A stretch of 64,000 nucleotides of DNA from Phaeosaccion multiseriatum (GCA_965112735.1 OZ218950.1:124001-188000); one strand, 5' to 3'; positions 347-64,000 are shown, counted from the first letter of the stretch. The notes: a model not told the origin generated them from the sequence alone. Numbers and translations are program-made.

Positions 347-1461
347 ATGACCTCATTCCATAAGGACGTCTTCTCTCCCTTCGGCACACCGTCCAACAGC
401 GTCTTCTCACCCTCTCCCTCTCCATTCGGCACGCCCTCCAAGTACATCAACACTCTGGGAGGAGGGGGCGACAACAGCAACGACTCCATGGGCTGTTACC
501 CCATGGGCTTCAATCTCTCCTCCTCACTGACCGCCGTGAGTCACAGCACACCGCACAGCTCGCCCATCAAAGGTGACAAGACGCGAGAGGGAGAGCATGA
601 AGCCGGCAAGGGCGCCGGAGCAGAGGGAGGGAAGGGCATCTTCAAGTCCAAACACCTCGAGAATCTCGAGCAGGTCCGGCCTTCGCAGGTGCCTGCCTCC
701 GCCGAGCAGTCTCCGTGTCCTGGCACCACCGCCGGCCTGGAGCTGTCAAAGAACCGCGACGGGGAGCGCCGCCACTGGGGAGATCAGCTCAAGAGGGGAC
801 GTGAGGCAGGCTTTGATGATGATGATGGCAAGCCGGCAGGATCGGCAGCGACCGCACTTGAAGCAGCAACAGTGTTGCGAAGGGCAGCAACGACGGGCAG
901 TTTCACGCCATCGAAACAGGGGCAGAAGAGCGACGGCATTCTCCGCCGATCGTTCAGGAGCGGAGCGGCGTTCGGCTCTCCTCGCAGCGTGACTCTCTCG
1001 CCTCGCAGACCGATGCGCAAGGGCGGCGAGACCATCAAGCTGGAGGAGGGAGTGGAGAAGAGGGCACCACGCAAGACTGGGCATGGGCATGGGCATGCTC
1101 ATCTCAGTAACTGTGTTCACGAGAGCTTCGGCTCCCCATTCGCCTCCCCCCCGCGCTTACGCGACAAGAGAGAGAGCTTGGCTGGTAGCGGTAGCAGCGG
1201 CTGCAGCAGCAGCGACGACGCCGCCTCTGCCCTCGTTTCGCTCGCGACACCTGTCTCCACCCCGCCGCCGACGCCGCCCACGAGTAGCAACGCTGGTCGC
1301 ACTGGGGCAGTGAAGAGAGGCACAGAAGCAGGGCCCTCACCTCTGGGGCTGGACGTGGATGGAGCTTTCCTCATGGGCAGCTTGGGCGGTGGGGGAGGAG
1401 GGGAGTCGACGCCTGGCCGATCCAGCAGCGAGTCGTCCGCCTTCACTTCCTTCTTCAGCTC

Positions 1462-1492
<31 letters not shown>

Positions 1493-4400
1493 GGTTCACC
1501 GGGCATGAAGCACGTGCTGCCCGCCGGGCAGATGGAGCCGTCCTCCCTGCCCAGCCACGCACACCACCAGTTGCAGCAGCAGCAGCAACAGTTGCTGGCA
1601 CAGCAGCAGCAGCAGCAGCTGCAGCAGCTCCAGCAGCAGGGCGGCTGCCAGACACCCAAGGGCTGCCAGACGCCCAAGGGGGGCTGCCAGACGCCGGCCA
1701 TGGCCCTGACGCCATTCAAGCAGGATTACAACGCCTTCCACGATTGCGTCAAGAACGCCGACGTGGGTGGTGCGGGCACGGGCAGCAACTGCAGTGCTGG
1801 AGAGGCGCTCGTTGCCGCAGCAGCCGCGCTGGGGAGGGAGGGCGGCGACAGGAACGACAGGAACGACAGGAACGGTAACCACGTGGACGATCATGACGTC
1901 GTTCCCGTGACGCCGGGGAGGGGCGGGGGGAGGCAGGCATGCTCTGCAGTGTCCGCCGACTCGTCACCCTATCCCTTCCGTATGGGCCTCATGGGCTCTA
2001 CCTCCTCAGCGCCGTGCTCCTCTCTCCTTGCGGCCGCCGCGGTGACATCTACTGCCTTCCCTTCTTCTGCCAATGCCAACGGAGACGCTTCTTCTCCGGG
2101 TCCTGCTGGCGTTGGCGGCGGGGGCGAGTACCGCGCGACGAGCAAGGGAATGGGGATGGGGATGGACGCTGACGCCCTGAGCAGCTGGGGGCGAACCGAA
2201 GGCAGGGGACTCACCATTGGCATCACCTCGCATGCAGCAGCAGCAGGAGGAGGAGGAGGAGGGGCGGGAGAGGACTTGGGCTTGACCGAGGGCAATTTCC
2301 AAATGGCGCTCGGACCCAATTTCCCCATGTCTCCCACCGCAGGAGGGGGGCGCGGAGGCTCTGTCTACCACTTCCCCGAGGCGGCTCACCACGGCGACAC
2401 CGAGGAGGACGATGATGACGATGAGGACGAGGAAGAGCAGCACCAGGGGCGAGGGGGTGGTCACAGACGGCGCCGATACAACCAACGCCACCAGGAGGAG
2501 GAGGAGGAGAGCGAAGACGGCTCCGAGTATGACTCCGATGCGTCTGACTATTATGATGGAGGGAGGAGGGGCAGACGGGCGAACAAGAGGCCCAGAGCAC
2601 GGGCAGGAGGGGTGGCGAGGGGAAGGGTGGCGGGCAAGGGCAAGGCCTCCGCCAGGGGCAAGAAGGGTTCGCCCAAGAGCACTCCGCAGAAGCGAAAGGG
2701 CTCGAGTGCTGCCAAGAAGGGCGTCAAGGGAGGCGCCTCCACAGGGGCAGGGGCGAGTGCAGGGGGGCTGGCAGAGGCGGTAGCAGCGGCAGCGGAGTCT
2801 GTAGGGAACGATGGAACGCCGCCTTGCCGAGGATCGTCGCGCAAGGGCAGGCGAAGTAAGGGCGGCAAAGGGAAGGGGGGAAGGGTCTTCGTCGATGACG
2901 CTGACATGGAGACCCCACCCGCGCGCAAGGGCCGAGGCGGCAAGGGGGGCAGGGGCGGCAGGGGAGGAGGAGGTACGCTGCACGCCGACCTTGTGGCGCC
3001 CTCTCCCTCGTCTCCTCGCACCCCGGGGGGGGGCAGCGGGCTTGTGGCCATGTGCGACAGCGACAACACTCCCGAAGTGGGGTCGAGGGTCGGGGTCAAG
3101 GGAGGAGGGAGGGGGGGGGGGTCGAGCCCCAGCTCTCCGGCGGCGGAGCAGCGTTGCAAGTGCAAGAAGTCTCGCTGCCTCAAGCTGTACTGCGACTGCT
3201 TCGCCCACAGCGTGTTGTGCGACCCTTCGCGATGCCAGTGTAAGGACTGCGACAACAACGACAATTCGAAGGAGTCCAGCACGAAGCGCTCCAAGGCCGT
3301 GGCCGTATGCAGGGAGCGCAACCCAGACGCCTTCACCAGCAAGCTCGTTCGACAAGTGAGTGCGCACGCGTGTGTCTCTCGTGCATGTGTATTTCTGCGA
3401 CAGTTACAGTTCTGCTGCTATTTTTCTTTCTCCTTCCTTTTTTTTTTTTACTGTTTGAAAGCGACGTGTCGTGCCAGCAACCGAATCCTTAACTCCCTCT
3501 CTCTCTCTCTGTCTCTGTCTCTTCCTCCCTCCCTCTCTCTGTCTCTGTCTCTGTCTCTTCCTCCCTCCCTCTCTCTCTGTCTGTCTCTGTCTCTTCCTCC
3601 CTTACTGCAGTCTCAAGGCGACGAGGGCAAGCTTCTGCACAAGACAGGCTGTAACTGTAAGAAGAGCGCCTGCCTCAAGAAGTACTGCGAATGCTTCAGC
3701 GGGGGCACCATCTGCTCCGCCAAGTGTAACTGTCAAGGCTGCGAGAACTACGAGGGGTCTGTGCGAAGGGAGCACCTCGTCAGAAACGGTCCACAGAGAA
3801 GGATCCGCTCGGCGTCGGCAGCGGCGGCAGCGGCGGTGGTCAATGCGAAAGTCGACGCCGCCGTGAAGCGCCAGGTCAACGCTCAGGCGGAGGCGGTGGT
3901 TGCTGATGTGACTGGAGACGCCCCCATCCCGCCGTCCCTCCCTGTGCCGCCGCAGCTCATGACCAGCAACGCTTCGCTAAGCAGCGCTCTGGTGCCCGGT
4001 GTGAGTGGGCAGGAGGAGAAACAGGCAGAGGAGGAAAAGGAGGGGGCGGGAGGGGGCAGAGGGGGGCATGGACAAGGCGCGGCAGCGTCCCCTATGAACC
4101 CAATGCAGGTGGAGCAGCAGCTGCAGAGCCAGCTTCAGCAAGCAGGCACACCCTCCACGCCTACTGCGGCAAGGGGCGCTTCCCCCGGGGTGGGGTTGTT
4201 CGGCCAGCAGACGCAGCAGGAGCAGCAGGGGCAGGAGGATAGGCAGATGCCCACCACACCCAACGTACACGTCCTGTCGAGGTCCGGGGGGAGAGAGCTC
4301 ACTTCCCCTTCCGGAGGAGGAGGAGGAGGAGGAGGAGGAGGAGGAGGAGGAGGAGGAGCAGGCGGACAGTCGGGGTTTGCCCCAGGCACCCCGCACCTGG

Positions 4401-4915
4401 CCGCCAGTGCCCCTACCCCCCCCCTCCATCAGGTCTACCACCGCGAAGGGTTCGCATCACCCGCGCTGATGGCGACGTCCAGTGCTGTGAGTGGTGCGAC
4501 TGCTCCTGCTCCTCTGGATGCGGAGGATAACAGCTCACTCCTGCACGCAGCTGGTGCTCCGGGGGCACCCGCCTTCGCAGCGACGGCAGCAGGAGGAGCG
4601 GCAGCAGGAGGAGCGGCAGCAGGAGGAGCAGCAGCAGCTGGAGGAGGAGGAGGAGGAGGAGGAGCGGCGCAACTTCGGCAAGGAGGAGCGCCTTCGTCTC
4701 CCTTCGTGCTCTTCTGTGCCGAGTCTCCGATGGCGGCCTCTCCAGGGGGGGGGCTCTCCAGAGGAGGAGGAGGAGGAGGAGGAGGAAGGGGGGGGATGGC
4801 AGCAGACGGAGGGGGTCACCACCACCCCGCCCCTCTGTCCTCCTCTGCCCGCCAATCGGCCCGTCTCGTGAGCGTGACTCGGCAGAAAGGGGGCCCAGCG
4901 GGGCTCTTGGGGTAG
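347..4915 (+). CDS. CRC/CXC-domain (Tesmin/TSO1/LIN54-like) DNA-binding protein
   Basis: Two CXC motifs (CKCKKSRCLKLYCDCF...C-C-CDN and GCNCKKSACLKKYCECF...C-C-CEN) joined by the RNPDAF linker. A GT-AG intron at 3356-3610 (CT-rich) separates them. Likely ATG at 347; an upstream exon cannot be excluded. Confidence 0.85.
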
Positions 4916-11078: not shown

Positions 11079-11686
11079 TCAGAGGGGCTTGGTCCAGGTG
11101 GTCTCCCTCGTCTTCTTGTTGTAGTAGTACGTCTTACCGCTGCCCTTGTCCACCACGGCCTTCCACTTGCCCTTGCCCTTGCCCTTGCCCTGGCCCTTAG
11201 CAAGAGGAGTCCCCTCTCCTGCAGCGGCTGCTTCATCCCTCACTCTCTTCTCCGCAGGGGCTGCTTCATCCCTCACTCTCTTCTCCGCAGCGGCTGCCGC
11301 GGCCTGCACAGCTGAAGCATCTCCCCCAGCAGCGGCGGCAGCGGTGGCAGCGGCGGCGGCGGCAGCAGCGGCGGCGGCAAGCGTAGCAGCAGCAGTTGGT
11401 GATACAGCAGCAGCGATGTTGGTCGGAGCTTGAGGAGAGGCACCTTGCGCCGCTGTTTCAGCTTTGGCGACGCTTGCGCCGGGTGTAGCAACAACAGGCG
11501 CACCAGCAGCAGGGGCTGGAGCCGGCGATAACAGCGTCGAATCGGTTGCCACGGATATCCCCACGGCAGCAGCACCGGCATCAGGTGCAGCACCGGCATC
11601 GGCACCAGGTGCAGCACCGGCATCGGCCGCCTCCTCCGTCGTGGGCCCATTCGTAGTCGCATTTAGATGCTCCTGCTGTATCACCA

Positions 11687-11729
<43 letters not shown>

Positions 11730-14300
11730 ATTCTCCTCCTCCTGTCGCTGCTTTTCCTGCTCCTGTTGCTGCCTCAAAAGAGCCTGCTGCTCCTGCTGCT
11801 GCTGGTGGTACTCCTGCCATAGCTTCTCTTGCTGTTGCCTCTGCCTCTCGGCCTTCTCCTGCTCCTCCCGCAGCCGCTGCTGCTCCTGCTGTTTCCTCTG
11901 CTGCTCCAATGCCTCCTTCCTCTTCTGCTGCTGCCGCGCCAGTCGCTGCGTTTTCTTCTCCTCCTCCGCCTTCTTCTTACTCGCTGCGTCGCTGATCTTC
12001 TGGGTGAGCGCTGCCGCTATCGCCGCCGCTGTTGCCTTTGGACACTCTACGGCGGCGGCTGCTGCTGCTCCTGCTGCTGCAGCTGCCTCCAAAAGCTCGG
12101 GTGGTGCCTCTGGAGGGAGGGGCGGCTGTGGGGGTAGAGCTTCTTGGCTATCGGAGGGGAGGGGTGGGAGAGGAGTGGAGGGGAGGGGCGGAAGAGGAGT
12201 GGAGGGGAGAGGCGGGAGAGGAGGAGGAGGAGGAGGAGGTGCAGGCGTCGAATGTGCATTTGCCGCTCCCGCATCGTCCTCTGGCGGTAGCGGCGGTAGA
12301 GGAGGGGGCAATGGGGGGGGTGTCGACGCTGCTGCCGTATCACCAACTGGTGTCGATGATGGAAGTGGCGGCGCCTCGTCGTGAGCGACTGATGCACCTG
12401 CAGTAGGCGGCTCTGTTTCCGAGGGCCCATTGTCGGCCCCAAGGCTCACAGCTGCTGCCTCCGATGGCCGCCCCTGCCACCTCGTCCGCTTGGCCTTGCG
12501 CGCCAAGTGGGATGCCTGGTCCCCCCCCCCGGCGCCTGTCTTGCCGTCCTTCTCCCCCGTAGGTCTCTCCTGTTCTCCATGCCCCTCTTCCTTCTTGCTC
12601 TCCCCACTGCCCACTGCTGCTGCGGTTGGCTCCTCCAGCACAGAAGAAGCCGCCGTACCGCCTTTTCCGCTGCGCTGCTGCTCGTCCTCCTCACCGTCCC
12701 TTCCCTCCTGATGGGCCTGATGGGCCGTCGCCTGGCCCTCAGTACCCTCCGAGGCTTCTCCCATTACCGCCACAGCAGGTGCAGCACTTGGTGATGCAGC
12801 ACCGGGAGGCAGAGAGTCCAGCGCATCCGCCGGGCGGCCCTGCCATCTCGTCCTCTTCGCCTTTCGTTGTTCCTGTCCTTGCGCCGCCTCCCCCTCCCCC
12901 CCCCCCTCCTCCTCCCTCTCTGCCTCGCCCCCCCCGCCAATGCCCGCCCCTGTCAGCTCTGTTGCTGCTGCTGCTGCTGCTGTCTCAGGAGAGGACGCCA
13001 AGTCTTGTTGCCCCCCCCCTGGCTTGCCCCTTCCCCTCTTCCCGCTGCCCCTTCTCGACTCTTCCTCCATGTGTGCCTCCTCTTCTGCTGAGGACGGTTT
13101 GTTGGACACCTTGGTGCCACTGTCTCTGGGCTTCCTCCTACTGCTTGTCCTACTATTGCTGCTGCTGCTGCTGCTGCTGCCGCTGCTTCTCTTACTCTCG
13201 CTAGACTTCGCCTCCTTCCCCTCCTTGTCCACGCCCTCGTCTTCCACCCGACCACCAGCACCACGGGCGGGAAGCGACGGTCCGTCCTCACGCCCTCCAG
13301 GAAACTTCGCCGCATCGGTGCCTCGCCTGCCCCGTTTGGTACCCTTCGCCTTCCTCGCCCCCTCCTCCTGCTCCTCCTGCTCCGACATTTCGTTCTCCTT
13401 TTCCCCCCTCTTCTTCCGTGCACTCCCCCCCATGCCTGCCGGTGCTGCTTCTGATGCGGTTGCGGGCGTGTCCTCTCCATCTGTGCCACTCGCCCTACCG
13501 CCCTTTGCGCTGCGCTGCTCCTCCTCGTCCCCCCCCCCCCCCTGATGGGCGTCAGCCTGGCCCTCAGCCTGGTCGTCCGCATGGTCTTCCTCCAATGCCG
13601 CCACAGTACATGCAGGAGTTGGTGATACAGCAGCAACAGCAGCAGTAGCAGTAGCAGGAGGAGAGGGAGGCGCAGGAGGGGGGGGAGGCGCTGACTCCGA
13701 GTCCAGGCCCTCGCCACCGGCAGCAGTTGGTGATACAGCATCGGCTCGTGGCCGGCCCCGCTTCGTGCCTTTGGCCTTGCTCCGGCCCTTGCCATCAACA
13801 GCAGGCTGCTTTGGGGCGCTGAGTCTCCTCTGCTTCGTCTTCGTTTCCATCTTCGTCTTTGTTCCTGCCCCTGTCTCAAGCGCCGCCTCCTTCGTGGCGG
13901 CGGTGGCATTCGATGCAGCAGCAGCAGTTGGTGATACAACAGACGCTGCCCTCACCCCCGCATCTCTATCCGCCTTGGCTCGAGCCCTCAAGGCCCGAGC
14001 GTGCGCAAGAGCCTCTGCGGCATGCTTGGCCTTGGCCTGAGCGGCTCTGACTGCGGCTTCGGCCTCGGCCGCGGCAGAGGTGATGGCGGCCATGGTCGCG
14101 TCATCAAGACCGTCGCCCCCCGCGGCCCCCTCCCCATCTTCTGCACCCCCTTGGGCGCCGACTGCTGCAGCTCCGGCAGCCACGGCCTCCGGGCGGGCCG
14201 CAGGGTCTTGTAGTGCCGCCAGAGCGAGGGCGGTGGCAGCCTCGGTATCAGCCCCTCCACCCCCTCCCCCCGCCGCCTGCTCCTGCTCCTCCTCCTCCTC

Positions 14301-14341
<41 letters not shown>

Positions 14342-17300
14342 AAGAGGAGGCCGAGGCGGCGGAGACTCGGGCAGCAAGTTCAGCGGCATACGCCCCCGCG
14401 CCAACAGCAGCTCTTCCAGACACGGCCGCATCGGCAGCGGTAGCAGCAGCAGTTGGTGATACAGCAGCACCGTGGGCTCCATAGACTCCGAAGGCCCCAT
14501 AGGCAGGGTCGTACCCCTGCCCCTGCCCCTGAGCAGCCATGTTATTCATCATCTCCTCCTGACCCCCCACATACTGCTGCTCGTACTGCCCGTCCGTGTT
14601 GGGGTAGGACATGACCGTGCTGGAGCGAGAGAGGTCCACCCCCTGGGCGTCTACCTCGTCCAACCGCAGCCGCTTGGCATGGGGCATGGTGTAGTGCTCT
14701 GGGTAGTTGAGGTGCAGCACTGGTTCCCCCACCTCGTCGTCCACCCCCCCCTCCTCCCCCCCTCCCCCCCCACGCCGCCCGCCGTCCTCTCTTGCATCGG
14801 CGTCTTGCGGAGCAGCAGCAGCTTGTTCGTTTTGCCACAGCTCCCCTCCCTCCTCCCCCTGCTCTCCCTGCAGCCCCTCTCCGGTCCCTCCATACCCCTC
14901 CTCTCCTCCTGCCCCTCCCCCCTCGTCTCCTCCTTCCCCTGGCGCAGCGAGTGGCTTGGCCAGCTGGTGCGGCTGAGGCGTCTGAATAACCCCCCTGGCC
15001 TGGAGCATGGCCACCACTGCGTCCTGGTCAGCTCGCATCCCTGCCTCCCGAGCCACGGGGTTGGGGTCGTCGTATGCCCACCTGCACACACACACACACA
15101 CACACACAGGGCCGGACAAGGTCAGGGTCTCGGCTGCCCACTCACAGAGGCGACTTTTTTTGACATGGGGCAGGGAGAGCGGGTGGTAAACACGAAAATG
15201 AACGCCATCTGTGAGCGAGAAAGTTCCATGCCATGCTGGACCACACACAGACGCAAATCTTAGGTTGATTCCTATGAGTCAATCATAACAAGGTGGGCAT
15301 GCTCTCCGCTTGCTTGCGCTCCTCCCTTCACACTTGTCTCTTTCAAGCCCTCCCTCCTTCCTTCCTTCCTTCCTTCCTTCCATCCCTTTCTGCCCACCCC
15401 CTCTCCTCCTGTACCTTATATTGAGCACCTCCTTATCGCTCTCCCCGTCGATGCTCTGATTGGCCATGGCTTCCCTCGCGAACTCCGCGCTGGCCCGCAT
15501 GCGGTAGCGCACAAAGGCAATGCTCTTCCTGTGAATCACATTAATGTTCTCGACCTCTCCCCACTCCCCAAAGTGCTTCCACATGGCCTCGTCAAGGTCG
15601 GCAGGGGTGGGAAATCTCGACCTCGATATGCTGCCCACGTACAGAGTGCGGCTCGGGTTGGTGAAGCTGCCAACGCCCGACATGTCCTAGGGGGTATAGT
15701 CAGTATGGCAATGGAGGATACTGGTATGGGTACGTATGTATGCATGTATGCTTGCATGCCTGCCCCAAGGATACAGTCATCATCATCATCATCATCATCA
15801 TCATCACGGCGCTCCTCCTTGAAAACTCACCCACCCACTCCCTCACTGACTCACATCCTTGTTGTCCTTGTGCCTCTCTCTGCTGAAGCAGTCCTTGAGC
15901 TGGTCATGCACCGCGTCGTCAGTCGGCACGGGCACCCTGTGGAAGAAGTGGCAGTCCTCCCCCCTGGCGCAAAAGCCGCGTGCGAAGTGGATGCAAAAGT
16001 AGCTCGCGTTGGTGTTGACGTAGTCGGCCTTCGTCCGGCCTAAAGGGGCAATGGAGAGGACAGGGGCAGGGGCAACGCACGGCCGACGAGGGGGGAGGGA
16101 GGGAGGGAGGGAGGGGAGGAGGGAGAAGGCATGAGAAAAAGGAGACAAATCGACCCATAACGCCACCCAGAGAGACATCCGCCAGACGACAGACATGGAC
16201 ATAGGCCCACTCGAGAGGCCCATTCGAGAGGCCCACTCAGACCCACTCAGGCCCACTCACTCACCTGCGTCCGTCTCGAGGCAGCAGCGCGACTCAGCCT
16301 TGTCCTTCCCCCTGTGATAGCTCCAATGGTCCCCTAGGTGCTTGCCGTACCAGATGTTGTACTCGCCCGCCCCCTCCAGGATGCTGCGGCTCTTGTCCTC
16401 AATGTGCGCCTTCTGCTTACGGGCAGAGCGCTCCAGGAACTTGTTGTTGCGCTCAATGTAGAAGTCAGAGGAGACTTGAGTTGGGCATGGTTGGCATGGT
16501 TGGGCGTGTTTGAAGACGGGTCAAGGGATAGTTAGGGTTAGTAAGGGTGGCGTGCGAGAGGAAAGGGGAGGGGCACACGCAACATGTAGAAAAGAGGGAG
16601 GGAAGGAGGTCAGTTCGCCGCCTGCAAACATTGCCCCAAGAGCTCAAGACGAAGCCAAGCTCTCTCTCTCTCTCAGCGCGGTCAGTGCCATCCAGTGCCA
16701 TCCATTCCACCTGTTTGGGGGTGGTATTGTCCCCCCCCTCGCCCCCCAAGTCCATCCACCTACCTGCGTAGGGGCCGGACGCGCCTCTCCCGTACCATCC
16801 CGAGGCGTGAGGAGCCGCGCCCATCTCCTTCGGCCTGTCCCATACCGACTCCTGCGTCACAGAGTTAAAGTAGTACATGTGCTGGCTAGCAGGGTCCAGG
16901 GCTTCCCTCCAGGGGCAGGCGGGCGCCCCGTGCACGGCTGCTTGGAAGGCCGGATCCATGACAAAGTCCCCGCCCTGGTCGCCTTTGCGTTCCTTGCAGC
17001 GGTAGCAGCGCTACAGGGGAGAGCGAGAGGGGGTAGAGGAGCGAGCGAGAGAGGGCGGGGGTGGGGGGGTTGGGCGTGTGCGAGTGGGCGGAGGAAGAGC
17101 ACAGCAGTAGTGTGTCACCCTGGCCCCACTGCGTCACCACGCCTGTGTGTGCTCTGCCCATTTTTGCACTCACCGTCCTCCTGGCGAGGTTCTCGTTGCC
17201 GCACTCCTTACAGCGCCAGTTCCTCTCGAACACGGTGAAGCTCTGCCCCACCTCTCCGACCGTCCCCACCGGAGTCATGTCCCTTGTTGGTCCATCCCAG

Positions 17301-53776: not shown

Positions 53777-55370
53777 AGTATAGCTTGAGTACGCGTCACG
53801 AATAGAGAGGAGGGAGTAGCCCAGCGTGCCACCCCGGGAAGCACTTCTCACAGAGCGCCACCTTGATGGTTGATAGCGGCATTGTATCTTGTACCTTTCG
53901 TCGCAGCGCTCTGCTGCGACACTTCTTCTCCTCGCATAGCAGCAGACAGACACTTCCACTTCGGTCAGTCATTTTTTGTCAATTGGGAGCCTGATCCCAC
54001 CCTTTCTCACTGTGGCGGGGCAGTCGATCTCATTCTCTCCGTACGCGGGCTGTACACACGAAATCACCATCATCACAGCAGCTCCAATGGAATTCTTCAC
54101 TACTCGGCCCCTGACAAGGTTCTGAGGCGGCCCTGGCCAGAACCTGCAACCTGGCCGGCTGATGCCGGCCAGAACCTGCAACCCAGGTTTTAACAGGGTC
54201 AGGGGGACCTTATCATTGCCTTATTACACGGCTTTTTCCGGGGAACCTGGAACCTACTATTTTTTTTCGATAATTCACTCTTGTCCCTCACTGCTATCGT
54301 ACGAGCTTTGCACAAACTGTCCCTTCCACTCCCGGTGTCACAGACGGGGGGGGAGGTCGGTTTATACATACGAAAAGGGAGAAGTGGCGGCAAGGCTCGG
54401 GCCTATAAACGGAAACTGAAACTAGATCGCATGTTCCTGGGCTCCTCCCTTCTTCCCCCCTCCCTGACTTCAGACGGCGGCGCGGACTTGTTGGAAGCGT
54501 TCGAGTTGGCGTAACAAGCATTCGTTTGGTTCTCGAGTACCCTGGTGTCGTTACCACTTGGGCCAGGCGCTTGGGAACCCCCTTTGTCTTCAGACTGAAG
54601 CATTCAATTTTCACTCCTCGTCAGGATTAATAAGACCCTATTTCTCAGGTGGATCGAGAGAGACAGTGAAAGAGCAGACGCAGTGGATGGACTTGAAGCG
54701 CGTTATGCCCTAAGTTGGATTTGGACCTGTTGAAGAAACGCAAAGGAGGTGCAAGGAGGATTGTTTGAAGGGGGGGGACCGTGAGAATGTGGCAGAAGTG
54801 TACTGTGGAGGGGTGCGACAAGCATCGGCAGCAAGGAGGAGTTTGCATTGGGCACGGAGCTGTGCCGAAGAGGTGTACTGTGGAGGGATGCGACAAGCAA
54901 CGAAGGCAGGGGGGACTTTGCCAGGGCCATGGGGCTGTGGTGAAGAGGTGTACTGTGGAGGGGTGCGACAAGCAGTCGCAACAGGGAGGACTTTGCCTGG
55001 CCCACGGGGCTGTGCTGGTACCGAAGAGGTGTACTGTTGAGGGGTGCGACAAGCAACCGAAGCAGGGGGGACTTTGCCTTGGGCACGGTGCTGTGGTGGT
55101 ACGGAAGAGGTGTACAGTTGAGGGGTGTAACAAGCAGCGGATCCAAGGAGGACTTTGCCTGGCCCACGGAGCTGTAAAGGTACGGAAGAGGTGTACTGTT
55201 GAGGGGTGTAACAAGCAGCGGATCCAAGGAGGACTTTGCCTGGCCCACGGAGCTGTAAAGGTACGGAAGAGGTGTACTGTTGAGGGGTGTAACAAGCAGC
55301 GGATCCAAGGAGGACTTTGCCTGGCCCACGGAGCTGTAAAGGTAGTAGTGTACTGTTGAGGGGTGCGATA

Positions 55371-55978
55371 TGTATATTAGAGCTTATGGGCTCAGTATTG
55401 GAGCGCTCGAGGTAAGTTGTAACCATGTGTAGATGTGTGTATGTGTGGTATAGATGGAGCGTGATGTGGAGGGGAAGAGGATGGTAAGGGTGGTAGAGTA
55501 GAGGATAATGGGGAATGGGAAGGGAGTGAAGGGGGGAGGAGGAGATGAAGGGGTGTGGGAAGGAGTGAGGTGGTGGAGGTGATATGTGAACTATCCTACT
55601 GTGGGTGGTGCGGGTGACAAGGCGTGACTAACTGTGGTTGCTATGCTGTGTGCTGATGGTCTCGCTGTCTGCTGGCTGGTGTACTCCGGCTCCTCAGGCG
55701 GCCGCTCCGTCGATGGCTCCCATGAGCCCCCAGTCGAGGGTTTCTGCTGCTTCGTGCTGCGTCATCGTGGCTCGAAGGAGGGTGCCATACCTGATCTCCC
55801 GCTGTGAGAGGGCGCGTTGAAGGGCGAGGGACAGTTGTTGGCGCAGGAGGCCCTTGATGGGGCCCGTGGCTGCCGCCGCTGCGGGGCCGAGCCCTCTTGA
55901 TGCCTTGTGGATGGCCATCGCCTCGATGAGCTCGTCCGTTTGGTGGCCCAGTCTGCCGTACGTCTCGATTGCAATGCA
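55371..55978 (-). mobile_element. 5'-truncated copy (608 bp) of the CRE-like non-LTR retrotransposon
   Basis: Matches 56065-56672 with about 6 substitutions seen by eye. Flanked by direct repeat GGGGTGCGATA at 55360-55370 and 55979-55989. Confidence 0.95.
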
Positions 55979-56064
55979 GGGGTGCGATAAGAGGGGGGTC
56001 CAAGGAGGACTTTGCCTGGCCCACGGAGCTGTGACCAAGAGGTGCACTGTTGAGGGGTGCGAGA

Positions 56065-59000
56065 TGTATATTAGAGCTTATGGGCTCAGTATTGGAGCGC
56101 TCGAGGTAAGTTGTAACCATGTGTAGATGCGTGTATGTGTGGTATTGATGGAGCGTGAGGTGGAGGGGAAGAGGATGGTAAGGGTGGTAGAGTAGAGGAT
56201 AATGGGGAATGGGAAGGGAGTGAAGGGGGGAGGAGGAGATGAAGGGGTGTGGGAAGGAGTGAGGTGGTGGAGGTGATATGTGAACTAGCCTACTGTGGGT
56301 GGTGCGGGTGACAAGGCGTGACTAACTGTGGTTGCTATGCTGTGTGCTGATGGTCTCGCTGTCTGCTGGCTGGTGTACTCCTGCTCCTCAGGCGGCCGCT
56401 CCGTCGATGGCTCCCATGAGCCCCCAGTCGAGGGTTTCTGCTGCTTCGTGCTGCGTCATGGTGGCTCGAAGGAGGGTGCCATACCTGATCTCCCGCTGTG
56501 AGAGGGCGCGTTGAAGGGCGAGGGACAGTTGTTGGCGCAGGAGGCCCTTGATGGGGCCCGTGGCTGCCGCCGCTGCGGGGCCGAGCCCTCTTGATGCCTT
56601 GTGGATGGCCATCGCCTCGATGAGCTCGTCCGTTTGGTGGCCCAGTCTGCCGTACGTCTCGATTGCAATGCACTTCAGGGTTGAAGTCCCGGGCAGAAAA
56701 CTGCCCAGGTAGTGGGTGCGCTTGCGTTCTTCGGCGGCGGCTGCTGCGTGGCCTGGCGTGGTGGAGGCCCGTCCCACGTGAGTGGGGGCGGTGGGGTTGG
56801 TGACGGTGATGTCGCAGAGGAGGTTTCTCCGCAGGGGTGCGTCCGCTCCCGGGAAGCTACCTGCGGGATAGGTCAGGTCCATGCGTAGGTCTCGGCCTGC
56901 TCGGGTGCCCGTGGGGCCGTCGAAGCAGGTCTGGTCCTCTACACGTGCTCCTCCAATGCCCACGCTGTGCATCATCCTCCCGAAGGCCTTGACGAGGAGG
57001 TGGTGTGTGTGGTTGTGGAGGCCGGTGCGGGGGCAGATGGTGGCGTGGGTAGTGCTTGCCGTGCGGGCGCAGCCTGTGCCAAGGCAGGGTGGGGGCGGGT
57101 CCGCGTATGGCGTGTTGACACCGAGGTTGCGACGAAGGGCCATGGTCCATTCTGCGGGGGCCATGGTGTTGTGGCCGTGGGGGAGCGCTCCGAGGAAGGC
57201 CATGGCGCCCCTTCCTCGCTGTGAGTGGAGTCGGGCTGTTGCCATTTCCTGTGTCTCCTCTCCCCTCTGTGCCTCTGCCGGTGTGACGTCGATGGTGGCG
57301 ATGCTCTGCGTCAGCTCCTCATGGCGGCGTTTGTGGATGAAGGTGGTGAGGGCCTTCTGGACGCCGTGGGTCGGTTGACGGCCTGCCTGATGGCTCCTGC
57401 GCACGTTGCGTCGCGCTGTGTCCTGGGCTTGGTGGTCAGGCGGCTCGAGTACGCGTGAGCGGGCCTCGTCGAACTGTGCCTGACCCACTGCTTGGATGAG
57501 GGGGGCCTCAGGGACCCCCTCCTCGTGCAGGAGGTTGACGCTGTCGGCGACGCTCTTGAGGGCTCCGTTGGTGAACAGCTGGTCCGGTAGGGCGCTCTCT
57601 TGGGAGCCTTCCCGGCGTGCGGTGCGGCTGAGCAGGGGGGGAGGGTGAGCATCTTGTTGCCAAGGTATGCTGCTGGGGCGATGTCGTGGAGGCTGGTGAG
57701 GCCGAGGCCGCCGAAGCGCCGTGCCGTATGCATTTGTAGGCGCTGTGTCTCCGTCCATGGCTCCTCTTGTGCATCTGCGGCCTGCTCCAGAGGGGGGCAT
57801 CGGGGAGTCGCATGATGTGGGCCATTGTCGCTCTGTTGGTGCGGTCTGCCCTGCTGCCGAGGGCGCGTCGGAAGATGGAGGGGTCAATGGCTCTCGCCAG
57901 GTGTGTGAGCCTGGCTGGGAGGCATTGGAGGAGGACGAGGGTGGCCGCCTGGGTGTTGTCCCACTCGCTGCAGTGTTTGGCGAGTTGGAGGTAGCCCCTG
58001 GGGTCTTCTTGGCCGAGGATGTTGCGGAGGTACTCTTCGATGTACTCCTCCGTGCCGACGGGGATGCCGGCTACCACGGTACCCTCGGTGGCAAGTGTGG
58101 CGCCCTGCCGTTGGGCGTGGTCCCTGTCAGCCTGTGTTGGCTGCTTGCCTTTGCCCATGAGGTAAACCGTTTTCCTCTCGTTGAACTCGAGGCCCAAGCC
58201 TCGGAATTGGGCTTGGAGATGGGCATGGCGTGGGGCGTAGGTCTGTAGGGGTGCGTCGGGTTCCAGCTGGTCCATGAGGTCGTCTGCGTAGGCGGAGATG
58301 GTGGGGCGGTTCGCTGCGGTGTCGGCTGTGTTCTGAACTTTCAGCACTGGGTGGATGGCGGCTGCGAACATGAGAGGCCCTTCTGGTGCTCCTTGGTTGA
58401 CTCCGGAGCTCTGGTGGATGGTCTGGGTGCCGTCTGGTGTGAGGGCGTTGTGGGCGGAGGCGTGGGAGAGGCTGGCGATGGCGTAGTTGATGCCTGCTGG
58501 GTCGATGGTAGGGAGTGCTCCTGAGGCTAGGACGCCTCTGGCACGCGACACGCGGGTGTAGGCCTTGGTGATGTCATGCAGCACGACGGTTTTGCCGGCA
58601 TCGTGCGCTAGCTGGGCTGCTGCGGCGTGTGTTTCCCCTCCGCCTCTGACCGCTACCGCTAGCTGTCCTGCGCTTCTGAGCTCTGGGCCCACCCTGTCCG
58701 CGATGAGCTTCATGTGACAGCTCTCCACGAGGCTGCGGTAGAGGTTGGGGGATGTCACAGGACGCGCTTTCTCGCCGAGGGCTGCGGCGCTGGTGCTGAA
58801 CCACCGTTTGGCGAGCTGTGGAGGCAGTGGAGTGTCCCCCGTTCGGAGCAGCTCGTAGGTGTCAGTCAGAGCCTCCACGATTGCGTACTCCTGGGGGCTG
58901 TCCGGGGGGTACTTGACGTGGCTCGCCCTGCGCCCGTCTGCTCCTTGGCCCTTCCAGAAGTTGACCCTCCGGTAGGTCAGCAGCATGGCTGTGCTGATCT

Positions 59001-62000
59001 CCTCTCTGGTGACGTCGTTGCCATTCTCGGGGTGCTCCTGCACCTGGGTTCTGGCGTACTCCCTGGCTGCTGCTGCTGCTGTGTTGATCTCTTCGAGGCT
59101 CTCGTCGACGTGCGCTTGCTGGAGGCGTCTAAAGGTCTCGTGTGTGGGAGGGAGGTGGCCGTCTCTGCTCTTTGTGCTGAGCCTCGCCGCGGCCTTGTGC
59201 AGGCCTCCGGGTTTGGTGAGCAGGTGGGCGCAGGTTTCTCTCCGTCGCTCCTCTGTCTGTGCCTGTGCTGGGGGTGGTGGGCGGCGTGCGTGTGCTGTGG
59301 CTATCGCTGCTTGTGCGAGTGGGGCGATGTCGAGGTCGAGGACCATCTGTATCCGCTGCTGGCGGCTGTAGGCTCCGTCTTTAGAGAAGAGCATGGCAGG
59401 GAGGAGGTGGTGGAAGACATCCCATGCCAGAAGGGTGTGGAGGGTGGCGTCGGTGGGGCCGTTCTTGTGGGCCCTCAGCGCCCTGTTCCAGTTGTTGAGC
59501 GCTCTTTGCTGTAAGCTGATAATCGAGCTGACGTGGCGGGGGTTGCACTGCGCTACTGTCTCAAACACGAGTGTTGAGAGGATGGTACCCTGCGGGTCCA
59601 GGGCCCCTAGGCGGAGGACGTTTGGGTGCTGCATGGGCCATCCTTCCTCGGGTGTATCGTCGTTGGCTGGCCCTTCTCCGTCCCCTCCGTCCCCGCCGCT
59701 ACCTCCTTGGCCTCTGCTCCGTCCTCCTCCCCCTCGTCTCGCTGCTGCTGCTGTGGTTCCTTGCGTGCGTGTGCTATCTCCCCCTGCCCTTTCTCTCTGA
59801 GGTCCCCTCTCTGCTGCTGCTCCTTGTCCGTTTCCTTCCCCCTCCCTCGTCCTCCTCTTCCTCCTTCTACTCCACTTGGCGCTGCTGCGATTGCTCCTCC
59901 TCCTCCTCCTCCTCCTCCTCCTTCCGCGTGCCCTCGCCCTCCTCCTCTGCCCGTGGGGGTGGTGGGTTGGTACGGGTTGAGCCTGGCCGTTGCTGTCGTG
60001 TGCTGGGGCGTTGCCGTACGCGACGGGTCCTCGTTTGGGTCTGGGCCTAGATAGGCGTTCTCGAGGTCGTTGAGGGGGCCTTGGTAGGCCGATGCTGCGT
60101 TGCCTTGGGTGAGGATGGTCCTGAGGGCGGGGATGGCTCGTTGAGCTTGGTAGCCAGCCATGCAGCCTTGCGCGGGGCAGGGGAGGTTGCCTGGTGGTAT
60201 GACGGGCTGCTGGTTGGCTCTCCTCAGTGTGGCTTGGTCGTTCAGGTGGTGAAGGAGGCACGCGGGGTGAACGGTGTGTTGGCAGCGTCGGGTGCGTACT
60301 GGCCACTCCGTGGTTGGTGCGATGAAAGGGGGGTCCGCGTCTGACATGCATATGCAGCATATCGGGGCTGGGGGGGCGGTAGGTTGGGGTGGGGGTGTGT
60401 GTCGGGTGGTGGGGGGTGGCTGGGACTGGCGGCGTCGCCCTTGGCTGGCCTGCGCGTGCTGCTGATGCGACTCTCTGCGCTCCCTCGCTAGGCGATCCCT
60501 TGCGCGGCCCATAGCTCTCCCTCCTTGTGCTGTGATGGCCTGCTCGATCATGTGCCGGTAGCAGGGGTTGCGGCAGTAGGGGCAGAGGTGGTCGTTGCGG
60601 TTGGGGTACCTGCTCATGACTCCCAATGCGCAGTGGTTGTGCACGTGATGTTCGCCTTCGTGCATGGCGACTTGTGCTTGGCCAGTGAGCGGTTCCATAC
60701 ACACCGGGCAGTTGGGTAGCTCCTCGTTGTTGGTGGGGTCGCCTCCTCCTTCTCCTTCGTCACCTCCTCCCGCTGCTTGCCCTTCCCCTCCTTCTGCCGC
60801 TGCTTCCCGTGCCAGTGCTGGGCGCTCTCCTCCGCCTCTGCTGTTTTCGCCCTCTTCCCCCCCTGCTACTACTCTTCCTTCGCGGTCTCCTCGTCCCCCT
60901 CCCCTGTGTCCCGCTCGCTCTCCTCTCCCTCCTCCCTCCTGGTCGTGCTCTCGTGTAGTGTCTGTCCCACCTGCTCTTGTCGGTGGGGGCATGCTTCGAG
61001 CTCGTTGGATGGTTGGCGGTGCTGGTAGGCTTGCGGCTTCGTGTGCTCGTATGCAGGCGTTGCATAGGGGTTGTCGTAGGCCTGATTGCGGGAAGCGGGT
61101 AAGGAAGGATCTGCCGGAGTTTCGGTGGGCCAGGTTGCCGCATCCACTTGTGCAGTCCCGGAGCTGGTACGTATTATTCTGTGGTCCGCTCTGTGGGCCG
61201 TTGGCGCGGTACCACAGGATTGACGCGGCCTGGGGGTGGTGTTCGCGCATCCATCGGTCCCACTCTCTGCCGCGGTTCGGGTGGTGGCTCGACTGGTGCC
61301 TGATGAGGCGGTCTCTTGTGTTGCCTACCGTGACGAAGGTGTCGTGGCATTCGCCAAAGTTGCAGAGGATGCCCCCTTGAATGTTTCCATTGTCGGGGTG
61401 TCTTCGGTACACTCGGGCGTTGTTGGGGTTGTCCTCCGGTGTTGGTGGGCTGGGTGTGGTTGCGTCGCTTTGGGCGGGGGGTGGTGGCGGTCCTGGTGCG
61501 GTTCCCCGGGGGGCCTGTCTCGTGCGTAGGGCGAGGGCTTGCCCCGGCGCCCACCACGGTGTGGCCATGGTGTTGGCGAAGGGGGAGGTGGTGGTGTTGT
61601 TGGTGTGGTCGCGTAGGGCGTGGCCGTAGCGCTCAACGATGGCTTGGACGTCGGGTAATACCGCGATGAGTTCCTCCTGTCGTGAGGCGGTGATGTAGTC
61701 GTTGACCAACTCGTTGGAGGTGATCTCTTGGCCTGCGAGCGTGTGGGCATAGGCCTCCACGATCTGTTGCCATCCAAGGGGGTAATCTCCTCCCCCATGT
61801 GGTCTTCCGGGGGTGGTGGGGGGGCCTCCGCTCCTTAGAGCTTGTCTGAGGAGGGGCATATAGAAGTGCGAGTTGGTAGGCGGGAGCGCCGCGTCGCGCT
61901 GGTGGCGTATGGTGTTGCTCCATGTCGTTGGTGCGTGTCCATGCGTGTCTGTTTCGAGTGATGCTGTCTCTTCCTCGTGCGTCGTGGGGGGTGGTCGTAC

Positions 62001-62808
62001 GAGGTCGGCGATGGCCTCGGCCGTGTTGTGGTGGGTCAGTTCCGTCGCGGTGAGGTTTAGGCTTGCGAACTCAGCGCTGATGCGTCGGCTGGCGGATGCT
62101 GGCGCTTGTTCGTTGAAGAAGAGGTTCGGGTGTTGCCGTATGGGGGTCGTGGCTGTGAGGTGGGTGTCTTCGTATTCGTCTTGGAGGATGGAGACGATTT
62201 GCTCTGTGATCCCGTGTGCGTTTCTGTGAGTTGACGCGTTGGTGGTTTGGGCTGGATCTGAGGCTCGGAAAGTGGCGGTTGGCCTTTCCGGGCTGCGTGC
62301 TCGGGGGGTCCTGCTTCGTCCCCTTGGCCTCGTGGTTGGCTGCATGGGTGCTGGGCTGGTCGCTGTGGGGGGTGGTGCTGTTGTAGGGCCTGTTGTCTCG
62401 CTGGCGGGCGTGGTAGATCTCCTGGCGGCTGGTGCTGTTTGTTGCCGTGTCGTTGAGATCGGTTGTGGTTGCTGCTGCTGGGGGTGGGCTTCCGCTGCTG
62501 TTGCTGTGGGTTCCGTGAGTGCTGGTGGGAGCTGTGGGTCCTGCGGGAGGGTGTTGCGGGGTGCTGCGGCCGCTGGTGGAGCCGTGATGGGGGTGGGCAC
62601 GCCTTCCCGTGCTGGTGTTTGGCGAATTGCTGCTGCCGCTGCCCGTCTCTCCCTTCTTTCGAGCCGCTGCTGATCGCGGCTCATAGGTGGCTCCTGCTGG
62701 GTTGCTGTGAGGTTTGCTGGTGTCTCCTGGGCTCCGGGGGGCCGCGTGGCCCCCCTGTCGTCCCCTTCCATGGTGGCCCTGTCTTAAGCAGAAAAAAAAG
62801 AAGGGTGT
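56065..62808 (-). mobile_element. Apparently full-length (6744 bp) CRE-like non-LTR retrotransposon with restriction-like endonuclease
   Basis: Exact TSD GGGGTGCGAGA at 56054-56064 and 62809-62819, RT and RLE motifs, no LTRs or TIRs. Confidence 0.93.
56388..62771 (-). CDS. Retrotransposon polyprotein (~2100 aa): C2H2 finger, 2 RING fingers, reverse transcriptase, CCHC knuckle, PD-(D/E)xK endonuclease; 3 frameshifts
   Basis: RT motifs: KARPV, QLAVAVRGG, LHDITKAYTRVSR, GVNQGAPEGPLMF, AYADD, GLEFNERKT, GIPVG, GGLGL..APAAY. RLE motifs: C..C..H...C, RMDLT, LCDITVTNP, EERKRTHY, IETYGRLG. Frames change at purine or homopolymer runs near 59845, 57795 and 57638. Confidence 0.88.
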
Positions 62809-64000
62809 GGGGTGCGAGAAGCATCGGAAGCAAGGTGGGATGTGCGAGAGGCATGCACGAGTGAAGAGGGAGGGAGCGGAGCAGAAGGAGGAGAATGCCC
62901 GTTGTACGCCTGTGCCCAAGCGAGGAGCTGCGGAGGACATCAATGGGAGAGGAAGGAAGAGGGCAAAATGCGCCCCTTCAATGCCTGAGGGAGAGGAGGA
63001 GAGGAAGGAGGAAGGGAAGGAGGCACTGGAGGATGGGAATGGGGTGGGTTTGCTTTCGGGGCTGGGGCTTCATGTCGGGGACGAGGTTCAACTGCCCTGT
63101 GACCTGTGGAGAGGGCTGGAAGATGGCGGGGCTGATGCTGCCACGGCCTTCTGCGGTCGTCGGGACAGGGAGCTATCGAATGGCGTGGTGGTGGCTGTGG
63201 GCCGGAGTAAAGTGTTGCTGCTGCCCCACCTCGCTGTGCGCACAAAGAGGAAGGGGGCGAGCCTGGAGAGCATGATCCGAGGCTTTGCGTCTGCCTACCA
63301 CCGCTATCGCTCAGGAGAAGTAGGGGAGGATGATGATGACGACAAGCTGAAGGAGGAGTGGGCGGTGCTGGAGGAGAGCATGGTGACGGCGAGTGAGAAG
63401 AAGAGGCGCGGACGGAAGGCGCTGCGAGCGTGCGTGCGTGTGGAGGGCTCTGCTGCGGATACCTCGGGACTTGGGATTTAGTGACCCGATGGCCTTAATC
63501 CGCAGTGAAGCTTGGCACGTGCAATGGGCGAACCGTAGAGTAAGTCAATTGAAGTGAATTGCCCCACCCACTCGCCACACACTGTGCTTCATTTGGGGGG
63601 GGGGGGGGGGGGCGAACGAATGGTTTTAACATTCACAATGGACTTGGCAGCCTACGGGCACGCTGTGTGTGTCACTTGGCGCTGGAGCTGCAGAGATGAC
63701 TTGGCACGACATCGGTTACAGGTATAGAAGGAAGGCTTGATGGTAGATGGATGGCACACAGAATCCGAGGAGGGGGCTTGGAAGTGACTTGAAGACGAGG
63801 CTCGCTGGGGGGATGGGGCACGTAAGCTTACTTGATGATCAGTGTATGGATTGATTGATTGATTGATTGCACTCCCTCTCGTGTCTACTGCAGCCCTGCC
63901 CCGTGTGTGTGTGTGTGTGTGTGTGAAGAGAGGAGTCAAGTCCAGGCATGGCCGCAAAGTCAGGCGTGGACTCGTCTCCTCTCTGCACATCACCCCACTT

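Follow-up and report, generated by a model that had tools for sequence, protein, structure and literature searches.

R2 is an animal LINE with a restriction-like endonuclease (RLE) and is specific for 28S rDNA. The CRE clade (CRE1/2, SLACS and CZAR) uses spliced-leader genes, and MoTeR and Cnl1 are telomere-specific. In reviews, the listed targets of sequence-specific LINEs are rRNA, spliced-leader, tRNA and snRNA genes, transposons, microsatellites and telomeres (PMC4640811). NeSL/Utopia elements are found in spliced-leader and U2 snRNA genes, and Utopia is present in oomycetes (PMC4640811). The nearest precedent found for a protein-gene family as a target is TcTREZO of Trypanosoma cruzi, which resides mostly in MASP pseudogenes. 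TcTREZO is non-autonomous, a composite assembled out of different genomic regions, and a reverse transcriptase (RT) or nuclease of its own is not reported in the review (PMC5814959).

The element described here was found in a 64,000-nucleotide stretch of Phaeosaccion multiseriatum DNA, the whole of which was analysed and is called the window. It is very probably an autonomous, R2-like RLE non-LTR retrotransposon whose integration proceeds via target-primed reverse transcription (TPRT) at one fixed phosphodiester bond in the tandem Zf_WRKY19 coding repeat. The mechanism is ordinary TPRT by an RLE LINE; the novelty is the target class.

Two element copies in consecutive zinc-finger units

The host gene begins with an ATG at 54787, which is followed by seven complete C-x4-C-x9-C-x2-H units and then by units 8 and 9. 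The units are 75 or 81 bp long (25 or 27 codons). Pfam Zf_WRKY19 (PF24906) matches the open frame of the array in 7 stretches with E 3.5e-43. The locus is arranged as follows.

54787..55341 (+): host gene from its start codon through zinc-finger units 1-7 (translation, Pfam Zf_WRKY19, repeat family D2)
55342..55370 (+): unit 8, left part, up to and including the left target-site duplication GGGGTGCGATA at 55360-55370
55371..55978 (-): copy 1, 5'-truncated, comprising the 3'-terminal 608 bp (3' UTR and ORF2 end)
55979..56064 (+): right GGGGTGCGATA (55979-55989), remainder of unit 8, left part of unit 9 ending in GGGGTGCGAGA (56054-56064)
56065..62808 (-): copy 2, full-length element of 6744 bp; LTRs and poly(A) tail absent
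62809..63481 (+): right duplication of copy 2 (62809-62819), remainder of unit 9, conserved C-terminal domain of ~200 aa, host stop codon

The sense strand of the element is the minus strand; hence TGTATATTAGAG, with which both copies start on the plus strand, is the element 3' end. The left junction of both copies lies directly after ...ACTGTTGAGGGGTGCGA(T/G)A. Perfect 11-bp duplications flank each copy, GGGGTGCGATA in the case of copy 1 and GGGGTGCGAGA in the case of copy 2. Aligned over 608 positions, the two copies show 6 differences, and their 3'-end haplotypes are T-T-C (older) for copy 1 and G-G-G (major) for copy 2. As each copy has its own duplication and a different haplotype, they correspond to two separate integrations. 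A first-pass annotation had described two antisense copies of one element in consecutive units 8 and 9, joined at the identical position, each with its own target-site duplication, one of them 5'-truncated and both integrated independently. Direct reading and alignment agree with this description.

Just upstream of the insertion, unit 8 carries a 5-bp deletion (GTAGTAGTGTAC instead of GTACGGAAGAGGTGTAC), and the host frame is broken. The left junction of copy 1 (55315-55399) is bridged with 0 mismatches by short contigs of three public runs, one of which has a different organism label; the right junction (55950-56025) is bridged by short contigs of one public run. The shorter side of these contigs measures only 26-29 bases, just below the 31-base rule. 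The joints of read contigs are uninformative on empty alleles because the units are repeated.

Architecture of the element

Copy 2 serves as the reference for the anatomy of the element.

56065..56387 (-): 3' UTR, 323 nt, sense strand pyrimidine-rich, RNA end ...CUCUAAUAUACA
56388..57640 (-): C-terminal part of ORF2 with linker, CCHC knuckle (57033-57086) and restriction-like endonuclease
56874-56888, 56802-56816 and 56709-56732 (-): endonuclease motifs LRMDL, CDITV and EERKRTHY, respectively
57641..57798 (-): third-frame stretch of copy 2 with the GGLGL motif (57698-57712)
57799..59634 (-): N-terminal part of ORF2, reverse transcriptase; ATG 59634-59632, Pfam RVT_1 core 58156-58677
59607..62771 (-): ORF1, 1054 aa in copy 2
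60564-60710 and 60162-60359 (-): RING-like fingers of ORF1
61284-61364 and 61053-61154 (-): zinc modules of ORF1
60994..61484 (-): divergent cassette over both zinc modules, from the comparison of two subfamilies
62772..62808 (-): 5' leader, 37 nt, ACACCCTTCTTTTTTTTCTGCTTAAGACAGGGCCACC, first bases target-like (ACACCCCTC)

ORF1 and ORF2 overlap by 28 nt across the ORF2 ATG, with ORF2 in the -1 frame. Inspection of the overlap by eye revealed no in-phase slippery heptamer of a -1 frameshift signal. The third-frame stretch is bounded by 1-bp length differences in the C-runs at 57798 and 57641. Near-identical copies likewise differ in their reading frames at G/C homopolymers, which may be due to assembly error or to real decay. 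In the window, the homopolymers on whose length one ORF of ~2250 aa or two ORFs would depend are at 60863, 59843, 59785, 57798 and 57641. Of 8 full copies, 4 have a +1 within a G-run that makes the ORF1 and RT frames continuous. One natural copy (L048:814-3804:-) is read from RT through RLE in a single frame and was used as the intact frame; broken frames entered the searches in the pieces that occur naturally, with neither consensus nor repaired frames used.

A repeat search found no LTRs within 56065-62808. The folding of the whole 3' UTR is no better than that of shuffled sequence (z 0.25); its last 100 nt reach a z of -2.0 and contain one small hairpin. A variant of the 3' UTR that lacks 286 bp is found in other public runs. 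The two subfamilies are ~99.9% identical outside the zinc-module cassette. Inside it, the DNA diverges by ~17% and the proteins are 74% identical (26% of residues differ), with all Cys and His residues kept.

Protein domains and classification

The RT domain scores 30.9-31.7 bits with Pfam RVT_1 (cut-off 29.6). In a profile search of the PDB it matches the RT cores of L1 ORF2p and R2 equally (E ~1e-14), and the nuclease has no match in that search. R2 is the only match in a single-protein search of the PDB with phmmer (E 0.22), with very low RT identity, and a word-index protein search yielded one weak match. Metagenome proteins include 853 homologues, all of which share the order RT-GGLGL-CCHC-D..D..K. 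The CCHC knuckle (C-x4-C-x8-H-x3-C) is located N-terminal to the nuclease, and an alignment of 13 homologues shows conservation of the Asp, Asp and Lys of the nuclease and of the Cys/His residues.

The AlphaFold model of the C-terminal domain has a pLDDT of 90.8. Its top 7 Foldseek matches in the PDB are all R2 proteins (probability 1.0); Prp8 and cap-snatching PD-(D/E)xK nucleases come next. For the predicted identity of the nuclease, this fold comparison by itself is decisive. The corresponding model of the ORF1 zinc modules (pLDDT 35.7) is unusable. RING and RVT_1 are the sole Pfam matches on the element frames. Accordingly, Pfam detects no AP-type endonuclease, no Myb domain in ORF1, and neither an Ulp1 protease nor an upstream RNase H domain.

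The RT domain, constant 3' end, variable 5' truncation, duplications and lack of LTRs are those of a LINE. The predicted PD-(D/E)xK nuclease C-terminal to the RT, the CCHC knuckle in front of it and the lack of an AP-type endonuclease are those of an RLE LINE. Insertion into spliced-leader genes is characteristic of the CRE clade and the target here is the Zf_WRKY19 coding repeat. R2 elements use 28S rDNA and have a single ORF with an N-terminal zinc finger and Myb; rDNA is not the target of this element, and no Myb was found. On the basis of sequence and predicted fold, membership extends to the wider RLE group only. The nuclease would nick its target in a sequence-specific manner. With an RVT_1 score above the cut-off, an R2-like fold, a fixed 3' junction and variable 5' truncation, the earlier description of the element as RLE-type and using TPRT is well founded.

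Genome-wide copies and the target site

The 3'-terminal 19-mer of the element occurs 108 times exactly in the 67-Mb genome, and the 3'-terminal 31-mer is present in 123 copies with at most 3 mismatches. Of the exact 3' ends, 97/108 are positioned behind TGNGNNA (pattern TGNGNNA plus 2 nt), a motif expected by chance at ~0.4% of random positions, and 84/108 behind GTGNGNNA. The reversed-pattern controls gave 0 in both cases. The motif is missing in the pattern search at 11/108 ends, for example on C4, C7, C11 and C12, and thus some off-target insertion is possible.

A total of 237 kb was read, and of 100 listed copies the first 20 were obtained with 7-kb flanks; the other junctions were judged from motif patterns alone. 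In the sequence read, element base 1 is the start of 45/45 good copies. The shortest copy measures 57 bp and the longest 6744 bp, distinct truncation points number more than 20, and there is one case of a twin-priming-like inversion. Target-site duplications reach 11 bp but are often shorter (3-9 bp), at times with a few extra bases. The 45 sampled junctions represent 38 distinct 60-nt flanks, 31 of which are zinc-finger units. The remaining 7 belong to insertions beside or into earlier copies, where a partial target (G)GGTG(T/C)GA(G/C)A is retained. The pairwise identity among copies is 98-100%; judged from the sequences, the element is young.

In the first-pass annotation, the multicopy target had been named as the coding repeat of an expanded family of zinc-finger genes, to be recognized from a genome search with the terminal sequence and a count of the flanks. 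The counts of motifs and of distinct flanks are both in line with this. Copies in unrelated flanks with no shared target motif were considered an argument against it. All distinct flanks read are either zinc-finger units or lie beside earlier copies, which upholds the proposed target, but some of the 11 ends without the motif may depart from it.

The element is antisense to the host gene throughout, and on the host coding strand its 3' end directly follows ...GARGGGTG(C/T)GA(G/C/T/A)A. With this fixed 3' junction, the first nick falls between the final A of the sequence and the AGC next to it (codons E-G-C-(D/E)-K). The same 3'-end haplotype is present in both GTGCGA and GTGTGA targets, and whether a target reads GCGA or GTGA showed no association with the 3'-end haplotype. 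The strict empty-site motif occurs 279 times in the genome (control 0) and the core 12-mer 367 times (reversed control 66). Roughly a quarter to a third of the units are occupied.

Possibly, only a short DNA word, the core of 11-12 bp, is recognized and the gene family is hit merely because this word abounds there. Such an explanation is unlikely. It would agree with the tolerance of the core, which accepts C/T at -5 and any base at -2, and with the insertions beside earlier copies, for which 7-10 bp of one-sided target together with one flank are enough. The 66 control occurrences imply that ~18% of the 367 core sites are expected outside the arrays, yet 0/31 primary insertions read are located there (0.82^31 = ~0.002). 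The width of recognition is unreadable from the logo, since the flanks are conserved through the repeat's own conservation. The zinc-finger motif is absent from the 3' flanks of six distant relatives (contigs L051-L056). Judged from these flanks, the zinc-finger specificity may be confined to this lineage.

The host gene family

Members of the host family share a conserved upstream region (500 bp), an open array and an open C-terminal domain, and paralogues are present on several contigs. The family is plausibly stramenopile. If its arrays belonged to another mobile or virus-derived element, the specificity would be that of a transposon for a transposon, as in Tx1L. The nearest Atlas cluster of Zf_WRKY19 proteins, 56% of which is from giant viruses (score 0.86, a lead only), points in this direction. 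So do the clustering of the family in few regions, its many broken members and the only moderate constraint on the C-terminal domain (dN/dS 0.4-0.9). The organization in gene units with conserved upstream region and open frames is that of host genes, however, and through divergence the protein identity of paralogues on other contigs is down to 50-60%. Furthermore, the GC content of the array is the same as that of the surrounding host genes, and no transposase, integrase or virus hallmark is situated beside the array within the window. A mobile origin of the arrays is thus very unlikely.

Tandem duplication and recombination

Part of the copies results from tandem duplication or recombination and not from integration. 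A ~4.1-kb block containing two copies, one of 949 bp and one of 2985 bp, occurs four times with identical flanks at C1:678-694 kb. The 608-bp copy 1 has a twin with the same truncation point at C1:196917, 17.5 kb off, which is recombinant because its left flank differs. That the pattern stems mainly from amplified arrays already carrying a few old insertions, rather than from repeated site-specific integration, is extremely unlikely and as a sole cause largely refuted, given the numerous truncation points, the 38 distinct flanks, the duplications matching each copy's own unit, the different haplotypes of the two window copies and the insertions in diverged paralogues on C1, C2, C5, C8 and C13.

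Proposed integration mechanism

In site-specific TPRT, the element nuclease would nick the host coding strand first. The free 3' OH would prime cDNA synthesis with the element RNA as template, and the second strand would be cut 11 bp away. The N-terminal zinc modules are the putative readers of the target. The RNA starts with ACACCC, the cDNA of which could pair with the target, so that a near-complete core (GGGTGT+GAGA) would be rebuilt at the 5' junction. A rebuilt core would explain head-to-tail tandems. Several hundred repeat units would provide a renewable multicopy harbour, comparable to rDNA for R2.

Comparison with known systems

The element shares with R2 the succession of RT, linker, CCHC knuckle and PD-(D/E)xK nuclease, and R2 proteins are the best structural matches of its C-terminal domain. 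Both are also strictly specific for site and orientation, have a fixed 3' junction that lacks poly(A), and vary in their 5' junctions and truncations; tandem insertions occur in both, and each has a multicopy target as harbour. In contrast to R2, the target is a protein-coding repeat instead of rDNA, no Myb is detected and the N-terminal part contains two RING-like fingers. As the element is antisense to its target gene, its RNA is not supplied by co-transcription and ribozyme processing, unlike that of R2.

The CRE clade and MoTeR/Cnl1 are protist and fungal RLE LINEs that likewise carry Cys/His fingers at the N-terminus and insert precisely into a multicopy gene arranged in tandem, but the target class differs. 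SLACS and CZAR have two ORFs, and the element described here may have two as well. NeSL/Utopia elements, also RLE LINEs, are strictly specific for a small multicopy gene and are present in the SAR supergroup. The element differs from them in its protein-coding target and in the lack of an Ulp1 protease or upstream RNase H detectable by Pfam. Tx1L, R4/Dong, Kibi/Koshi and other sequence-specific LINEs similarly exploit abundant repeats (transposons, microsatellites) as renewable targets. These targets are non-coding, and the endonuclease of Tx1L is of the AP type.

Like TcTREZO, the element is a site-specific retroelement residing mostly within a large protein-gene family. It differs in being autonomous and in targeting a repeated domain inside each gene. 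The target class had been considered unfamiliar for CRE-like elements in the first-pass annotation. Protein-coding repeats are indeed absent from the reviewed LINE targets, but TcTREZO in MASP pseudogenes is a partial precedent.

Significance

R2-type proteins are under development for site-specific gene insertion. A relative whose putative N-terminal recognition cassette is different and apparently modular is therefore of practical interest. It is doubtful whether this zinc-module cassette is a swappable, fast-evolving targeting module and whether the element is possibly in conflict with the zinc-finger family. If so, the element would be a natural retargetable RLE retrotransposon that reads protein-coding sequence. 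If the zinc-finger proteins bind or repress the element, it would, in choosing this target, attack a host defence instead of merely finding a safe harbour.

Young insertions in the genome number more than 100 and empty sites, natural variants included, ~300; together they offer a natural system for the reading of sites by an RLE LINE and its tolerance of target variation. The same system could be used to follow how disruption, tandem blocks and unequal crossing-over reshape a gene family. Since a repeated protein domain of tandemly arranged genes is the harbour, the strategy of hiding in a multicopy target also works within coding sequence.

Two insertions in consecutive units of a zinc-finger gene

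Two copies of a 6744-bp R2-like retrotransposon interrupt a host gene whose tandem units of 75 or 81 bp each encode C-x4-C-x9-C-x2-H. The units belong to Zf_WRKY19 (Pfam PF24906; E 3.5e-43, seven stretches).

Host gene start and element insertions in the window (coordinates, strand, feature)
54787, +, ATG of the host gene; the translation runs directly into the tandem units
55371-55978, -, copy 1, 608 bp, in unit 8
55360-70 and 55979-89, duplications of copy 1, GGGGTGCGATA on both sides
56065-62808, -, copy 2, 6744 bp, in unit 9
56054-64 and 62809-19, duplications of copy 2, GGGGTGCGAGA on both sides

On the plus strand both copies start with TGTATATTAGAG, immediately 3' of ...ACTGTTGAGGGGTGCGA(T/G)A. 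Coordinates and alignment agree with the first-pass annotation, which had placed two copies in consecutive units 8 and 9 with 3' junctions at the identical position. Copy 1 has 6 mismatches to the first 608 bp of copy 2 and is, as claimed, 5'-truncated. The proposal of two independent integrations also holds: each copy has its own 11-bp target-site duplication, and the different 3'-end haplotypes (variants of the element 3' end) are a further sign of separate events.

Downstream of copy 2 the host frame resumes with the remainder of unit 9, followed by a ~200-aa C-terminal domain and a stop at 63481. Immediately left of copy 1, unit 8 has a 5-bp deletion (55342-55352, +; GTAGTAGTGTAC vs GTACGGAAGAGGTGTAC in other units), a frameshift in the host gene unrelated to the two insertions.

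The copy pair (55371-62808) is duplicated 17,546 bp downstream at C1:196917-204350. The twin of copy 1 at C1:196917 shares its truncation point and right flank, but its left flank is different and its duplication mismatched (GAGA vs GATA), suggesting that a recombination breakpoint lies within the element. This twin arose by recombination or segmental duplication and does not count as a third integration.

Read support comes from short contigs of public runs, which are blind to transcripts and empty alleles. The left junction of copy 1 is spanned with 0 mismatches in three runs, one of them under another organism label, and the right junction in one run; the bridging contigs have 26-29 bases on the shorter side. 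Contigs of two other runs, X5 (high depth) and X6 (another organism label), join 55409 to 55696 and thus represent an element variant without 286 bp of the 3' UTR (55410-55695, same part of copy 2). The last ~40 nt of the element may suffice for priming.

The remaining window contains ordinary eukaryotic genes, including 83-4915 (+) and 11079-15248 (-), a Tesmin/TSO1 CXC protein and a WW-domain protein. Within the 64-kb window, zinc-finger arrays and element copies are confined to the region described above.

Three parts recur in paralogues of the host gene: an upstream region of 500 bp, the array and an open C-terminal domain. Identity of this domain is 88-90% within contig C1 and 50-61% to copies on C2, C5 and distal C1, with dN/dS of 0.4-0.9. 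The data are consistent with a genuine gene family under weak constraint, in which many members are now broken. As a lead only, the nearest language-model (Atlas) cluster of the array (54787-55356, +) is Zf_WRKY19 and 56% giant-virus (score 0.86); the next nearest clusters are diatom.

Site specificity in the genome

Allowing up to 3 mismatches, the genome has 123 matches to the 3'-terminal 31-mer of the element; the terminal 19-mer has 108 exact matches. The exact ends are preceded by GTGNGNNA in 84 of 108 cases and by TGNGNNA in 97, and reversed-pattern controls for both motifs gave 0 matches. Junctions were read directly in 237 kb around 50 places. All 45 good copies start at element base 1, and they vary in length from 57 bp to full length, with over 20 distinct 5' end points inside the element. 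The copies read are 98-100% identical to the window copy. Their 60-nt left flanks comprise 38 distinct sequences: 31 come from zinc-finger units that vary in sequence (C1, C2, C8 and the far end of C1), and 7 are junctions with earlier copies that retain 7-10 target bases. Counted back from the nick, the target shows little or no variation at positions -13 to -6, -4 and -1, has C or T at -5, and mostly has G or C at -2. A single 3'-end haplotype is found in both GTGCGA and GTGTGA targets.

These flanks and ends bear out the proposal that the zinc-finger coding repeat is the multicopy target. Counts of the strict empty-site motif TGYNNNGTNGARGGGTGYGANAAG (279; control 0) and of the core 12-mer (367; control 66) correspond to ~300 empty units against roughly 110-120 occupied ones. 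Of the 31 primary insertions read in the 237 kb, 0 lie outside the arrays, where ~18% of the core words are expected (P ~0.002). Their absence there suggests either a recognition sequence longer than the 12-mer or a regional preference.

Six exact 3' ends in the whole genome have GAGA-AG-TATATT in place of GAGA-TG-TATATT. Since AG follows the nick in the empty site, priming of these copies seems to have occurred two bases further on. In about ten other 3' ends the start is TT, not TG.

5' junctions and rearranged copies

Some copies have perfect 11-bp duplications, like the two in the window; others have duplications of 9, 8, 7, 6, 5, 4 or 3 bp, a few of them with 3-4 extra bases, and one junction has a small target deletion. 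Such junctions are expected when the first nick is precise and the second half of the reaction is loose, as in R2. At C8:1571974-1572369 (loci L029, L030) the order is a 323-bp copy, 70 bp of the element in inverted orientation (positions 410-479), GGGGTGTGAGA and the next copy. The inverted 5' piece resembles a twin-priming inversion. At C1:678487-695032 (loci L008-L012, L023, L025, L026) a block of ~4.1 kb occurs four times head-to-tail, each time with copies of 949 and 2985 bp on either side of a zinc-finger remnant; the insertions were duplicated in tandem here and do not represent four new events.

Full-length copies start with ACACCC..., similar to ACACCCC of the target, and head-to-tail junctions read GGGTGT+GAGA, nearly the whole target core. 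This likeness would aid 5' joining and rebuild the site for the next insertion.

Organization of the element

Features of the element (coordinates, strand, feature)
Upstream of ORF1, -, 5' leader, 37 nt
62771-59607, -, ORF1, 1054 aa in the window copy
61284-61364 and 61053-61154, -, two Cys/His modules of ORF1
60162-60710, -, two RING-like fingers of ORF1, between zinc modules and RT
59634, -, ATG of the RT frame, 28 nt before the ORF1 stop, -1 frame

The RT frame matches RVT_1 above Pfam's cut-off. The RT is followed by a GGLGL motif, a linker, C-x4-C-x8-H-x3-C (57033-57086), LRMDL, CDITV and EERKRTHY; the 3' UTR (323 nt) has no poly(A). The fingers of ORF1 match zf-RING_2 under Pfam's cut-off (E 1.5e-5), and their language-model neighbours, a lead only, are all RING proteins (scores 0.80-0.86). 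Seven distant relatives have N-termini without any Pfam domain, which suggests that this element's lineage acquired the RINGs.

Frames were taken unrepaired from individual natural copies. RT, GGLGL stretch and C-terminal domain lie in three different frames in the window copy and in one frame of 997 codons in another copy (L048:814-3804:-). Eight full-length copies are 99.4-99.9% identical, apart from a divergent zinc-module cassette in two of them and 1-bp differences, almost all in runs of at least five G or C. In 4/8 copies, one extra base in a G-run (sense position 2966 or 3024) brings ORF1 and RT into one continuous frame; in 5/8, one G fewer at sense 1946 cuts ORF1 short. These length differences look like long-read homopolymer error, with real slippage as a possible alternative. 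Given frame differences at G/C runs, one long ORF, as in R2 and CRE, and two ORFs both fit.

Two subfamilies were compared on the basis of two divergent full copies (C1:190017 and C5:95766), which differ from the window copy almost only at sense 1325-1815 (60994-61484). This cassette shows ~17% DNA difference with in-frame indels, 74% protein identity with all Cys/His retained, and dN 0.15 vs dS 0.32; changes are concentrated in and beside the two zinc modules. The near identity of the rest points to recombination between lineages or homogenisation of everything else.

Relation to R2 and other site-specific elements

A full HMMER pass over 1.84 billion representatives yielded 853 homologues, metagenome or genome proteins, the best with 34% identity across RT to nuclease. 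An alignment of 13 homologues keeps the RT motifs, GGLGL, the Cys/His knuckle, two Asp and a Lys. In a PDB sequence search the family profile had matches of similar strength to the L1 ORF2p and R2 RT cores (E ~1e-14) and none to a nuclease. Among PDB matches to the AlphaFold model of the last 336 residues (33 homologues, mean pLDDT 90.8), the top seven are all R2 proteins (Platysternon, Taeniopygia, Bombyx; probability 0.97-1.0, E 5e-4 to 5e-2); Prp8 and viral cap-snatching PD-(D/E)xK nucleases follow. No AP endonuclease was found in the element's reading frames with Pfam. The predicted R2-like fold, together with RVT_1 and the architecture, supports membership in the wider restriction-like endonuclease (RLE) group of LINEs, within which the first-pass annotation had proposed a CRE-like element.

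Targets of sequence-specific LINEs named in reviews are genes for rRNA, tRNA, snRNA and spliced leaders, as well as other transposons, microsatellites and telomeres (PMC4640811). No RLE element targeting a protein-coding repeat turned up in full-text literature searches. The nearest precedent found for a protein-gene-family target is TcTREZO, a composite site-specific retroelement located mostly in MASP pseudogenes of Trypanosoma cruzi (PMC5814959). The mechanism is ordinary and the target class, as initially proposed, is new.
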